A stretch of 64,000 nucleotides of DNA, from positions 24,304,001 through 24,368,000 of the forward strand of contig OZ281497.1 of assembly GCA_965637545.1 (NCBI GenBank), given 5' to 3'. Of the stretch, positions 41,293-62,620 are shown piece by piece. Source of the DNA: Phallusia mammillata. Taxonomy: Eukaryota. The translations under genes and the position numbers were made by a program. A model generated the notes under the pieces. It was not told the DNA's origin. It worked only from the letters and a program-made list of their open reading frames with translations, and did not search any database. Numbering within the stretch: position 1 is the stretch's first letter; each line of letters begins with the position of its first letter.

Positions 41293-42380
41293 ATGATGAA
41301 CTATTTTTTTCTTGCCATTTTTGTGGCTTCTTTTGTTGGCAAAGGTGAGGCTTGCTTCAGTCATTGTAATATTAATCTGCAATACTATAAAATATAAGTT
41401 TTCTGTGGCTGAATGTGTGTGGGATTAAAATATACATGGTATTCGTGCTTACTTGGACAGAGCAAACCAATCTTATTGTTGTTGCAGGGTTTGGAATCCA
41501 ATGTTTTTATTGCGATTATATTCCGAATGTGGCACACACTGCAGACTGTAAAGGACCAAATATCACAGATGATAATATAAAAGACTGTCCAGACGACACG
41601 ACTTGCAGTGTCCACAGAATAGGGTTTATGGGTGAATATATCTTATGGTTTTTGAGGCATAGTACCTAAAAATGCTCCAAATCGGCTAAATTAGGTTCCG
41701 GTCGAATCAACCGAGTCATTGTGACATCAGGTAAACAGTGGTAATACCCACCAGGATAGTTGTGTTTCATTACCTTTTTGTTCTGTGGGGTTTAAGGTTG
41801 CCTAGGCCAGCCTGCCTATAAATTATTTACTTATTGCCAGGAAAAAAAGGATTACGTTTGAAAAATTACTTAGTATTTTTTTGTTAAAACTCAAAGTAAA
41901 ACCTAGTACCATTCAAAGATCAAGTATTTTCTTGCTTTTCTGGAGTTTGCCGATAAAAAATTTAAGTAAAGATCTATACACCAAGTAGCTGCAACAGTAA
42001 CCGCCTTAAAGATATTCACATGACAAAAACCACGTCAACAGCAGTAGAAAAATAAATGCTTTTAACCTTTTAGAACAACTGAGATACCATCGTAATTGTA
42101 GTTCTGAAGGCGTTGGAGTTTTGGTACAAAGTTGCACAACAGGTGAGCATTAGTTTTGTTAACAACTTTTAATAACTGACAAGTTTTGTTCAACATTGTT
42201 TTAAACATTGGTATTTCTCTCTTAATTGTCTTATAGTTAGCACAACTTAATACATTGTCAGTGGACAAGTCCAGAGTGGTTGGGTAAAAGGGAAATTTTG
42301 CTTGAATGTAAACTGCTACCCTTACTTACGATGTTGTATATTTTTGTACTGTAGACCTCTGCAATACTGACAACAAATAG
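41293..42380 (+). CDS. Secreted Ly6/uPAR (three-finger) protein A1, 96 aa, 8 Cys, no GPI signal
   Basis: Exons 41293-41344, 41488-41631, 42074-42142, 42355-42380, all phase 1: MMNYFFLAIFVASFVGKGFGIQCFYCDYIPNVAHTADCKGPNITDDNIKDCPDDTTCSVHRIGFMEQLRYHRNCSSEGVGVLVQSCTTDLCNTDNK. C-x2-C start and CxxDLCN end are LU hallmarks. Confidence 0.9.
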
Positions 42381-42679
42381 ATGGGAATCAACAAAGGAAA
42401 ATTATATGGACCGTTGTGCACAATGAGTCCACCACAATAAACTGTTTTTCCCAGTGCTTTTGTATTATTGCTGATTTAACAGTCTCCAAGATAGATTACT
42501 TTTAAACAAACTAACAAAAACTGATTTTAATCGGTGAAAACAGGAAAAAAACAACGTTTTTTTAGTGACCCATGTTATATCTAACTAATCTTGTAGGTTA
42601 TTGCACCACCGACAATAAACTTAGTACAAGTAGCATAACTCAAAAAGCTACGGTCATATTCATTATCTTATACGACGTG

Positions 42680-43850
42680 GAGTTGAGTTGAGTTGAGTTT
42701 ATTTCGCTTGGCAAAAGAACACATAGCGACACAATCGCAGTAAAACAATCACCAAGGCGGAAATAGCTGCGAAGCGCGAAACAGTCAAGGAAACAATTGA
42801 TGGATCATGGCAAAACGCGGTGCAGCTACACCTTATTGCACAGCGTTATGTGACCAAGGCCCAGTTTGGCGCACAGTAAGTAAACACGACGAAGGACGAA
42901 ACGTTGGTTAAACCAGTCGAGGTACTTCTAACAAAACTAATCCCCGATAGATACATACTTGGAAGTAGATACATATCACGCTGCTTCAAGCTAAAAGTAA
43001 CTCATACAGGAGGAGATCAACTAAAAAACGAGCATGACTTTTCGTATTTCCTTTCATCTAATTTTCTAAGACAAGATGGGAAAATTTTCAGGGAAAATTT
43101 CACTTTCAGGGAAAATTAAATATTGTTAAACTGTAACCAAAATTGTGTCTTTGAAGCACTAATCATCTAATTTGTCAATTATCGACAGTTAAAGTTCTGA
43201 AAAAGTGCTCATTAGTCCCAGCACCCCACTTTTATTTCAGGTCTATCAAAAAGATTAGCCTAGTACCGCCTTGGTTTAAATGCGCTTAAACCCAGCACTT
43301 AAAGAGTTGTCAAAACGCCAGTAGCTCAACTTAATAGAACAATTAAACAGAACAATCCATAATTCGAAACAGAAGAACGATATCCATAAATGTTTAGCAA
43401 AACAATTTAAGGACACAATCACTCAGAGTTTCAACCAATCAGTAAAATGCGACAGAGTCAACTTAACAATTGATCGACAAAATTCAAATTCAATGAAACA
43501 CTAGCCAAAAATGTGTTTGCGTAAACAGTTTGAAGACATCAGAACAATAAAACGAAACAACCAATTTCCACAAAAAAGACAGAATTCAGGACAATTAGGC
43601 GACAAAATTATTTGAAATGCGAAACAGAATTAGGCAGGCTTCCAGACATGTAATTGAATTAAAAAGAATTCTTTGTGATCACATTGTGAAGTAAACAATT
43701 GCTTTAGCCTACTATGACATAGCAATAGAAAAATGGGGGTATTAAAGCAGGCCAATACATAACACTAATGTGCATTTCAGCTGGATAAGGCGCATTAAAA
43801 CAGTATAATAAAGAAAATTAAAATCGCCAGATTCATTAAAAAATTCTTTA
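42680..43850 (-). mobile_element. Possible decayed LINE 3' remnant (also ~57370-58500)
   Basis: Minus strand ends in aataaa followed by (ctcaa)n, resembling a non-LTR retrotransposon tail. No open RT frame recovered. Confidence 0.3.
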
Positions 43851-43909
43851 TTTTATTGTAAATATTGTTGTGTACTGTATAAATAACTTTCCTCTGTAGT
43901 ATACTGCAA

Positions 43910-59977: not shown

Positions 59978-60436
59978 TGTAGCGAAATTTTATTTGCTTG
60001 TTGATTTTTGTCACCGTCACGTATTGTTTTTGTTCTTTTTCGTTGTGGCACCTTAATTACGTTTTTGTGTTGTGGCACCCTCGCTGCTTCCCCTTAGGGG
60101 TGATTAGTTTGCAAAGCGTTGATTACTCCGGAATGTGCCTTCTTGTTCCACATGCCTCAAATAGCGCGTCGTTAGTCGTTGAGATGGCTTTTCTCTAGGC
60201 GCTGTGAAACGTGTTGGTGTTGGCGTTGGTGTTGGTGTTGGTGTTGGTGTTGGTGTAACTTTGCTTTTACGTTGTTTCAAATATAAGTCGCGCCCATAAG
60301 CTAAACCAGTGTGAGGGAGTATAATTGGCTTTAGTGGTGAGCCGTGATTGCAGGGTTCTGGACCTGTTGCGAATTAAGTAAGCAGGCTTGGTGCATAAGA
60401 TCCATTTATCAGGCCTGCCGAAAAAATTCGGTAACA
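59978..60436 (-). mobile_element. Probable solo LTR (Gypsy-like), 459 bp
   Basis: TG...CA ends with short inverted termini (tgtagcgaaatttt / aaaattcggtaaca); 4-bp TSD atag; aataaa near the minus-strand 3' end; absent from duplication copy 1. Confidence 0.8.
60211..60256. repeat. (TGTTGG)n microsatellite inside the solo LTR
   Basis: About 7 units, one with a t>c change. Confidence 0.85.
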
Positions 60437-60904
60437 ATAGCACAATATAAAAACATAAACATCCACTGTCCGAGTTTTATTTTGAAAACCTAGTCCTAGA
60501 TAAATTGTCGGAATCTGTGGCAGTTTTCTATATCACAACAATCCAACATAACAATAGATAGGAATTCAAAACAAAAACAATTCTTAATAATTTCTGGGCA
60601 TTTTTTCGCCACAGCAGTCCGCGTTAAACTTTTTTATAGTTATAGTTATATAGCCGGTAACAAATAAGACCACATGCACAATAGCAGAACCATTCGAGAT
60701 AGGTAGGCGTGGAAAAGCAACGTTCGTTAATAGTGCTGTGTCTGACTTGATTTTATTAATTAGTTTTTTGATGATTAAGGGTTTCAGCAAAAACTGCACT
60801 TATAGATAAAGATGTTCAATCAAAACGTTTTAGCGTATCAAATCTACATATATTCTCTTTCATTGCAGAAGATATTTGTAACAAACTTTACAAATAGCCA
60901 AACC

Positions 60905-62620
60905 ATGAATTCCCTTCTAGTTACAATGGTTGTAGCTGCTGTTTTTGGAAAAGGTAAATCTGACTTTTGAACGATTTGTGAAAATGGTTTAAGCTTTAAG
61001 GTGTGGGCTACAAACGTATGTATAAACTAGGTTAGATGCATTTTTTCAATTGTGTTGTTGTAATACCAATTCTCAGTTGTGATTGGGCTCTAAATTGGGC
61101 CGAATCTGCATGGCTAGACTCAAAAGTTCGAGTCAACAACTCTCCCGATGCTCATTGTTTGTCATAGTTAAGCCCTTAAAGGCTTGAAATTTTAAAGTAA
61201 TTTCGACTCGACATCAAGTTGTTGTTTTTTTCAAACTCAAGCTCGATGCGGAACCCAAAATATCGGCCCAACATACAACTATACTTCTGTTGTGTTAGAT
61301 ACACTGTTGTAATATTGTTGTACTTTTCTTGACCCGGGAGCTTATAAAACAATTAGGAAAGTTATGCAGTTGTATTGTTGCAGGATTTGCTATAGATTGT
61401 TACGTTTGTGAGTACACCCCGGCTCTACAACCACAGTCGACTTGCAGAGGCCCGAACGTGAGCGACATCCACCGACAAACCTGTTCAGCAGATATAGCGT
61501 CATGCAGCGTCCATGAACACACTTTCCTCGGTAACTACGATATACGTTTGAAATAAAGTGCACAGAATTGTTCATAAAATTTATGAGAAATAGAATGGCC
61601 CAAATGTACGTAAAAAGCAACATACTTTACTGTTCAGACGTTTCGGCAAATGCTCATGTCGTCAACAGTAATATATACCAGTGCGAAGCATAAGTCTGCT
61701 TATCTAATACTAGTTTTTCAAAATTCGTATATTTTGTATATTTTGTTGACCTGAACTCTAATCCAAACGTTTTCTTAAGCAGAAAGTTAGGGCATTTCCA
61801 AACTAGCCTCATAAGTGTACCACGAGCAAAAATTATGGCAAAAAGTGGTGACAAGATTTTAACACAATTTATTGTATGGTATCTCTAAACAACACTCTCC
61901 AGTATTTGTGGACACACCTTGTTTTATCTCCGTTCATTGCGAGACACCAAATTCGGTTGTATTGTACATTCAACAGAACTACGCTAGTGTTGGCGCGTGG
62001 CGCTTAAAGATGTGCAACATTATTTTACCACCAGATTTATAGAGCTCGTCTGGCAAATGTATTTTTATTCCGACGTTCCCACGTCCTATATGCAGGTCGC
62101 CTTCATCAGGGAAAATAACATTGATTGCGCGTAATGCCCAATATATTATGCCTGGCAGCAACATGTTACATATTATTTTTTTACCAGGATGGCTTTAAAC
62201 TAAATGTTTCTAGAACATCCGAAAATTGTGCGTAGCTGTGGTGCTGGTCAAGCAAATACGCGAATACAACACTGCACAGCAAGTAAGCGGTCGATTTGTT
62301 ACTTTTATCAATTAAACAGTCATTGGCAAAACTTTACTCAGATAGAATTACATTGCTGATCTAGTGCATTGTTCAGTTACAGACGCTTTTGTATTATTAA
62401 TATATTACAAAAGTCCTTATTTAGTAGTTATTTTTTAGATTTAAATATTCGTGATAAAACTACAGAGAATATTCTTTAAAAACGTAAACAAGCTAAAGCA
62501 ATTTTGGGCCAAACTGTAAAATTTCTTTAAAAAGTTTAAAAAAAAATCGATTGTAAACTTGAGCAAAACATGCTTGTATTCTGTTTGTATATTACAGATC
62601 TATGCAATACTGCGAATTAA
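60905..62620 (+). CDS. Secreted Ly6/uPAR protein B2, 95 aa, 8 Cys
   Basis: Exons 60905-60953, 61384-61530, 62214-62282, 62598-62620; differs from B1 at 7 residues, including RCC to RSC. Confidence 0.9.

Follow-up and report, generated by a model that had tools for sequence, protein, structure and literature searches.

A tandem gene cluster of Phallusia mammillata encoding putative soluble Ly6/uPAR-type domains that lack Cys7 and Cys8

The gene cluster

The stretch of Phallusia mammillata DNA analysed here (contig OZ281497.1, positions 24,304,001 to 24,368,000 of the forward strand; 64,000 nucleotides, hereafter the window) carries four genes, A1, B1, A2, and B2, between 41.2 and 62.7 kb on the + strand. 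Each is predicted to encode a signal peptide and one domain of the Ly6/uPAR (LU) type. The gene models were rebuilt from the sequence, and the splice sites were fitted by a script. All four genes consist of four exons with canonical GT-AG borders, and all of their introns are in phase 1. Positions are those of the whole stretch; beyond the window end, they are chromosome positions minus 24,304,000. The exons are as follows (a slash marks the splice border).

41293-41344, +: A1 exon 1; start codon and most of the signal peptide, hydrophobic N-terminus, phase-1 end; donor AAAG/gtgagg
41488-41631, +: A1 exon 2; end of the signal peptide and Cys1-Cys5 (fingers 1 and 2); acceptor ttgcag/GG, donor ATGG/gtgaat
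42074-42142, +: A1 exon 3; Cys6, 11-residue link, Cys9; 69 nt, phase 1; acceptor ttttag/AA, donor ACAG/gtgagc
42355-42380, +: A1 exon 4; D-L-C-N, four residues, stop; acceptor ctgtag/AC, no GT donor ahead of the stop, poly(A) signal at +55 nt
45838-45886, +: B1 exon 1; signal peptide
46316-46462, +: B1 exon 2; Cys1-Cys5
47128-47196, +: B1 exon 3; Cys6 with an extra adjacent Cys, and Cys9; R-C-C-G, against R-S-C-G in B2 and in B3, a further copy beyond the window
47514-47536, +: B1 exon 4; N-L-C-N, three residues, stop
53499-53547, +: A2 exon 1; signal peptide; DNA 96% identical to the corresponding part of A1 exon 1
53685-53828, +: A2 exon 2; Cys1-Cys5; DNA just 72% identical to A1
56755-56823, +: A2 exon 3; Cys6, 11-residue link, Cys9
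57051-57076, +: A2 exon 4; Y-L-C-N, four residues, stop
60905-60953, +: B2 exon 1; signal peptide
61384-61530, +: B2 exon 2; Cys1-Cys5
62214-62282, +: B2 exon 3; Cys6, link, Cys9
62598-62620, +: B2 exon 4; N-L-C-N, three residues, stop

The exon plan is the same in the four genes: exon 1 (49-52 nt) holds the start codon and the hydrophobic leader, exon 2 (144-147 nt) five Cys residues, exon 3 (69 nt) two Cys residues, and exon 4 (23-26 nt) an x-x-C-N motif followed by three or four residues and the stop codon. The product of A1 has 96 residues and those of B1, A2, and B2 have 95. The cleavage site of the leader was placed by eye, with no predictor; if about 19-20 residues are cleaved off as the leader, a mature peptide of about 76 residues and about 8.3 kDa remains, which is near neutral or acidic. 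The Cys residues are spaced as C-x2-C-x11-C-x12/13-C-x5/6-C-x14-C-x11-C-x4-C-N, and three or four residues and the stop follow.

A preliminary description of this DNA had proposed four spliced genes, each encoding a signal peptide and a single domain that ends three or four residues past the CN motif. The rebuilt models, with GT-AG at every border, agree with this, and the proposed distance of 11 residues between Cys6 and Cys9 was measured in them as well. The eight-Cys pattern given there is conserved, except that B1 carries one Cys more, a ninth, adjacent to the sixth. The number of genes had been put at four, which is correct for the window; the count becomes ten when the genes past its end are included. 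These were found by a six-frame search of the species' own genome with A1 exon 2, which gave copies beyond the window, and the 50 kb downstream were then examined. Six further genes of the same build lie 7-37 kb past the window end (70,999-101,045): B3, D, and E are on the + strand, whereas F1, F2, and F3, three near-identical copies, are on the - strand. The locus is a previously unannotated tandem cluster of at least ten genes in about 60 kb.

All ten genes have four exons, GT-AG borders, phase-1 introns, eight Cys residues, an Asn after the last Cys, and a stop codon 2-4 residues past the CN motif. The Asn of C-N, a position typical of LU domains, is never within an N-x-S/T sequon. The mature peptides, 73-77 residues behind a hydrophobic N-terminus and hence within the 60-90 residues expected of an LU domain, have isoelectric points (pI) of 4.8-8.2. 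Each gene encodes one domain with its own signal-peptide exon and stop codon; two or more consecutive LU domains are found in none. The exon-2 peptides of the paralogues are 28-51% identical to that of A1. The ten copies are more than a product of chance: the eight Cys residues, the Asn, the splice sites, the stop position, and the poly(A) signal are kept despite this divergence. The exon-2 tree places the cluster by itself to one side of a branch, though the support is weak (70/87).

Additional Cys residues are present in several copies. That of D is in the leader only, whereas the mature part of F1 and of F2, but not of F3, includes a ninth Cys. The ninth, unpaired Cys of B1, F1, and F2, which the near-identical B2, B3, and F3 lack, might permit covalent dimers, or it might be a polymorphism or an assembly error.

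Relation to LU proteins

A HMMER profile of nine exon-2 peptides, that of A1 among them, was compared with 1.84 billion representative proteins at expectation values (E) up to 0.001. Exactly two proteins matched: CAK8680265.1 of Clavelina lepadiformis (P0001; E 2.3e-7) and CAB3263085.1 of P. mammillata itself (P0002; E 4.6e-4), both values being library-wide. P0001 passes the Pfam family QVR (PF17064, Quiver family, u-PAR/Ly-6-like) with 48.7 bits at a cut-off of 27.3, and P0002 scores 24.1 bits. Both have a ten-Cys LU domain and a hydrophobic C-terminal tail of the type that signals attachment of glycosylphosphatidylinositol (GPI). When a profile of the ten joined gene models was compared with P0002 in a script, it scored 53.5 bits in an alignment that begins at the first residue and extends to the CN motif. 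As controls, P0002 was shuffled 2000 times in full, which gave at most 7.8 bits, and 2000 times with its Cys residues fixed, which gave at most 25.2 bits. Both controls are far below 53.5 bits, which means that the likeness exceeds a shared Cys frame. Furthermore, the P0002 gene, which is on another chromosome (C1, 35.536 Mb), has four exons and three phase-1 introns at identical positions, including the unusual intron that splits C-T-T from D-x-C-N. As judged from these sequences, the cluster domain is homologous to LU domains, and the kinship asserted in the preliminary description holds on the strength of the two QVR-type matches and the shared intron positions and phases. The phase-1 borders agree with the exon set of LU domains, and the cluster genes have one intron more than the three-exon LU archetype (PMC6600238).

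Other searches added little. A word-index protein search gave no candidate for the A1 exon-2 frame, and for P0002 it gave only P0002 itself. Among the sequences of the Protein Data Bank, the sole match of the exon-2 profile was a methyltransferase (E 0.94), which was set aside as chance; P0002 gave repeat-driven matches to designed Kelch-like proteins, and candoxin (E 0.047) was its only toxin match. In the ESM Atlas, the named clusters nearest to B1 exon 2 were QVR, Toxin_TOLIP, and UPAR_LY6 at 0.75-0.85, which is below the counting level and is a lead only.

Very large tandem arrays of QVR-type single-LU genes were observed on chromosome C1 (35.53-35.69, 2.6-3.06, 9.58-9.74, 6.69-6.89, and 17.53-17.55 Mb), with 126 six-frame matches to P0002 in all. 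A GPI-type tail is present in many of these copies and missing from some of those at 2.8-3.0 Mb. The exon 3 sequences that could be read in the other LU arrays of the genome all keep ten Cys residues.

Alignment of the cluster with P0002 brings R-x-C-G (Cys6) and C-T-T/S-D-x-C-N (Cys9 and Cys10) into register. Cys7 of P0002 falls in a gap of five residues, and its Cys8 is opposite a consensus Leu of the family profile. The pair that had been described as missing is thereby identified as Cys7 and Cys8 of a ten-Cys protein: Cys1-6, Cys9, and Cys10 are present and Cys7 and Cys8 are absent in all ten genes, so the full consensus set (bonds 1-5, 2-3, 4-6, 7-8, and 9-10) occurs in none of them. In P0002, the spacing is C6-x7-C7-x4-C8-x3-C9, and the 7-8 bond closes a loop of four residues only. 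Exon 3 is 81 nt in P0002 and 69 nt in the cluster, and 16 and 11 residues, respectively, separate Cys6 from Cys9. The much shortened third loop of the preliminary description is indeed short in comparison with CD59, but it is just five residues shorter than in the nearest ten-Cys relative. Since the Cys7-Cys8 loop of P0002 has only four residues, the short third loop is, by this sequence comparison, a trait of this ascidian branch and is not peculiar to the cluster. For the same reason, loss of the 7-8 bond would be a small step. The analogy once drawn with the first domain of uPAR, a multi-domain receptor in which loss of the bond is tied to flexibility of the pocket, does not carry over to a lineage whose parental 7-8 bond closes only a mini-loop.

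LU domains are known to tolerate the loss of one bond (PMC6600238); the absence of Cys7 and Cys8 therefore marks a variant and does not exclude membership. According to Leth and colleagues, the 2-3 bond is often lost, for example in snake toxins, whereas loss of the 7-8 bond occurs "in very rare cases". They list TGF-beta receptor 2, the N-terminal domains of uPAR, C4.4A, and Haldisin, and two multi-domain proteins of Drosophila, for which expression in vivo had yet to be verified (PMC6600238). The same review calls the 7-8 bond indispensable for single-domain members. A natural single-domain family without this bond is unusual.

The C-terminal ends differ as well. The GPI-type hydrophobic tail of P0002 is encoded in the same last exon (exon 4) as its CN motif. 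In the cluster, none of the ten genes has a hydrophobic C-terminus or a GPI-attachment signal, no vestigial tail is present in frame past the stop codon, and no GT donor occurs between CN and the stop. AATAAA or ATTAAA lies 43-79 nt past the stop in all ten. The stop directly after CN, the lack of a tail remnant and of a donor, and the nearby poly(A) signal indicate that the products are probably soluble and secreted. This is in accordance with the earlier statement that a GPI signal is missing.

Duplication history and other features of the window

The pairs A1-B1 and A2-B2 arose by duplication of a single unit. Their B halves are about 94-97% identical over the whole length, in introns as well as exons. 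The DNA identity between A1 and A2 changes along the gene: 93% in the upstream flank, 94-96% in exon 1, 77% in intron 1, 72% in exon 2, 77% in exon 3, 87% in intron 3, 73% in exon 4, and 84% in the 3' flank, with intron 2 unalignable. For the mature part of this pair, the nonsynonymous divergence (dN) is 0.30, the synonymous divergence (dS) 0.51, and dN/dS 0.60. Synonymous sites differ about three times as often as sites of intron 3 (about 18/48 vs 26/207; Fisher p 1.7e-4). Positive selection is not claimed for the A pair, since dN/dS is below 1 and dS is raised. Gene conversion from a cluster paralogue was considered as the cause of the divergence and rejected: A1 and A2 are mutually nearest in every exon, and since the cluster has no other paralogue nearer to either of them, conversion from a known copy does not explain the pattern.

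Between the older paralogues, dN/dS is 0.17-0.43 (A1-B1, 0.17; B1/B2-B3, 0.30-0.31; F copies, 0.25-0.38; D-E, 0.43), and it is below 1 in every pair. Synonymous sites are saturated among the paralogues, yet the eight Cys residues, the reading frames, and the splice sites are intact. A conserved leader joined to fast-changing mature-peptide exons recalls the three-finger toxins of snakes and the toxins of cone snails. In venom three-finger toxins, the mature-peptide exons diverge faster than the introns. Repeated recent duplication, together with the fast mature exons of the A pair, suggests a quickly changing task in recognition or defence.

Intron 2 of A2 contains an apparently young transposon of the hAT type.

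54400-56748, -: hAT transposon in A2 intron 2; terminal inverted repeats 91% complementary
54660-56420, -: intact open reading frame of the hAT transposase, 586 residues; weak Pfam matches to DUF4371, hAT dimerisation, and BED

The element is flanked by an 8-bp target duplication, TTCTAGAG, at 54392-54399 and 56749-56756. Since this duplication holds the exon-3 acceptor of A2, the element landed on the acceptor and duplicated it. As read from the sequence, correct splicing of A2 is still possible, but only via the downstream copy of the acceptor.

Several other features were observed in the window. Between B1 and A2, on the + strand, there are an exon-like piece of a fibrinogen C-terminal domain (49857-49991; Pfam E 0.005, below the cut-off) and a C-terminal exon of a universal stress protein (51676-51852; Usp, 59 bits); the region of about 49.3-52.5 kb has a copy, 94-95% identical, downstream of the window end. 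The upstream neighbours include an exon of a secretin/adhesion-type seven-transmembrane receptor at 29050-29607 on the + strand (7tm_2, 40.8 bits) and an aldo-keto reductase exon at 19046-19387 on the - strand (51.7 bits). A dinucleotide microsatellite of the TG/CA type (60176-60286; W-C-W-C or T-P-T-P, depending on the frame) is located about 620 nt upstream of B2 exon 1. Short dispersed repeats at about 42681-42771, 43933-44006 (in the spacer between A1 and B1), and 46961-47040 (in B1 intron 2) are 90-95% identical to many contigs of sequencing runs that are guessed to hold RNA. In the stretch compared, which takes in A1 and B1 exons 1-3, these contigs touch only short repeats, at about 42.7, 43.9-44.2, 46.5-46.6, and 46.96-47.04 kb.

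Interpretation and comparison with known systems

We consider it rather probable, from the sequence relations described above, that the cluster is a lineage-specific family of soluble single-LU ligands derived from anchored ancestors. The ancestors would be single-LU genes with ten Cys residues and of the Pfam QVR type, a group that is massively expanded in this genome and often has a GPI-type tail. Two changes would then be common to all ten genes. A stop codon 2-4 residues past CN would remove the GPI signal borne by the last exon of the parent, and a small deletion in exon 3 would remove Cys7, Cys8, and their four-residue mini-loop. The product would be a free domain of about 8 kDa held by the putative bonds 1-5, 2-3, 4-6, and 9-10, and it might dispense with the 7-8 bond since in the parent branch the third finger had already become vestigial. 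With this finger cut to an 11-residue link, binding would rest on fingers 1 and 2. The proteins may act as diffusible extracellular ligands or modulators of membrane receptors or channels, by analogy with secreted SLURP as against anchored Lynx. A bolder version of this proposal is possible but doubtful: the cluster would hold the first natural LU proteins of a single domain able to fold and act without the 7-8 bond, which is regarded in the field as indispensable outside multi-domain receptors, and these would be soluble "two-finger" ligands of tunicates, whose anchored ancestors lost the tail and the third finger and whose mature-peptide exons diverge faster than the introns.

A number of observations weigh against a family of functional soluble ligands. 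The proposed function is drawn by analogy alone. AlphaFold2 gave a predicted local distance difference test score (pLDDT) of 48.7 for exon 2 alone, which is unusable, and of 51.6 for P0002 with an alignment of exon fragments, which is too poor to use; Foldseek found no structural match with the low-confidence P0002 model. Pfam returned no family for single exons of A1, B1, and A2 even at E up to 10. Deletion of the 7-8 bond in single-LU proteins is reported to lead "invariably" to unstable, aggregated recombinant protein (PMC6600238), and stable folding of the cluster proteins is consequently an assumption. None of the ten proteins was found in the public protein collections searched. The RNA-guessed contigs, from four runs of four studies, cover no exon of A1 and none of B1 exons 1-3, and among the listed sequencing runs that hold the stretch, none is on record as RNA. 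The transposon sits at the exon-3 acceptor of A2. The last four of these points would also fit silent or decaying LU copies, in which the anchor and the disulfide were lost by damage and no functional protein is made, but decay is improbable. The RNA-guessed runs are small and of unknown tissue (some may be embryonic), so silence is not established by them. The frames are intact in all ten genes, whose splice sites, eight Cys residues, CN, stop position, and poly(A) signal have been kept while synonymous sites became saturated, and the low dN/dS between the older pairs speaks against decay too.

It is also conceivable, but unlikely, that the domain is of LU descent and is no longer a three-finger protein, either because the eight Cys residues pair in a non-canonical manner or because the fold has been reshaped into two fingers. 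The salamander pheromone PMF has a Cys pairing that differs from the LU consensus. Cys6 and Cys9 are separated by only 11 residues, and the low-confidence P0002 model shows no third hairpin; on the other hand, the six N-terminal Cys residues and the C-x4-C-N end align column by column with the ten-Cys relatives, and the simplest pairing retains the bonds 1-5, 2-3, 4-6, and 9-10. Still less probable, indeed very improbable, is retention at the cell surface through a hidden downstream exon or through association, covalent or not, with an anchored partner. The Cys count is odd in B1, F1, and F2, which also weighs against the main reading, and the ninth Cys of these three could form such a link; moreover, the 3' ends are not defined by transcripts. 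However, the count is even in the other seven genes, the anchored relative carries its tail in the CN exon whereas the cluster genes stop just after CN, and there is no donor before the stop, with a poly(A) signal close downstream in every gene. The most serious competitor, though itself rather unlikely, leaves the molecules as proposed and changes their task to defence or toxin-like secretion, or to gamete or self/non-self recognition, instead of modulation of endogenous receptors. The tandem duplicates are young, the mature-peptide exons of A1 and A2 are far less alike (72-77%) than exon 1 and the upstream flank (93-96%), and possibly embryonic runs gave no signal. The near-neutral or acidic charge of the mature peptides is unlike that of cationic membrane-active peptides, which argues against a membrane-lytic role, and no pair of genes has a dN/dS of 1 or more. 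A family of soluble ligands derived from anchored LU proteins is the reading that we retain.

LU domains are among the most reused extracellular binding scaffolds of animals and serve in complement control, fertilisation, ion-channel modulation, and snake toxins. A conserved family of ten genes without the 7-8 bond, in the same genome as its ten-Cys relatives, is a natural experiment on the purpose of this bond, and the answer it suggests is that the bond is dispensable once the third finger has shrunk. The family would also show that anchored Ly6-type genes can become soluble via a stop codon in their final exon. The cluster provides sea-squirt biology with an unannotated set of candidate secreted ligands, and it should appeal to research on LU-domain folding and on ascidian secreted proteins. 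If the genes are silent or the proteins cannot fold, what is left is a curiosity in the turnover of gene families. In the literature examined, neither this family nor any secreted single-domain LU protein without the 7-8 bond is described; the papers examined that name both Ciona and Ly6 only cite unrelated work, and a 2026 survey of invertebrate LU proteins makes no mention of tunicates or Ciona (PMC13719153).

Among known systems, SLURP proteins and snake three-finger toxins resemble the cluster in consisting of a signal peptide and one LU domain with no anchor. Snake short-chain toxins have four disulfides, as predicted for the cluster, and erabutoxin has a short third finger. SLURP proteins are taken to keep all ten Cys residues. 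Snake toxins drop the 2-3 bond and keep the 7-8 bond (PMC6600238); the cluster is the reverse, with C-x2-C and Cys3 present and Cys7 and Cys8 absent. The N-terminal LU domains of uPAR, C4.4A/LYPD3, and Haldisin/LYPD5 also lack the 7-8 bond and keep the LU scaffold (PMC6600238). These, however, are parts of multi-domain proteins with a GPI anchor and are supported by the LU domain that follows, whereas the cluster domain stands alone and unanchored; no specific sequence similarity was found between them and the cluster. The ectodomain of TGF-beta receptor type 2 is without the 7-8 bond as well (PMC6600238), but it has gained two extra bonds and is part of a transmembrane kinase, and the two Drosophila LU proteins without it (PMC6600238) are multi-domain.

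The closest likeness is to the ascidian QVR-type single-LU proteins P0001 and P0002 (PF17064), which share with the cluster the signal peptide, Cys1-6, Cys9, Cys10, and the CN end; the four exons and three phase-1 introns of the P0002 gene are shared in position. They differ in having ten Cys residues, with a four-residue Cys7-Cys8 loop in P0002, and a hydrophobic GPI-type tail, both of which the cluster lacks. The cluster lies outside the GPI-anchored Ly6 proteins, the multi-domain uPAR-like proteins, and the toxins of the snake type, and we class it as a variant of the LU superfamily whose closest kin are on the ascidian QVR-type branch.

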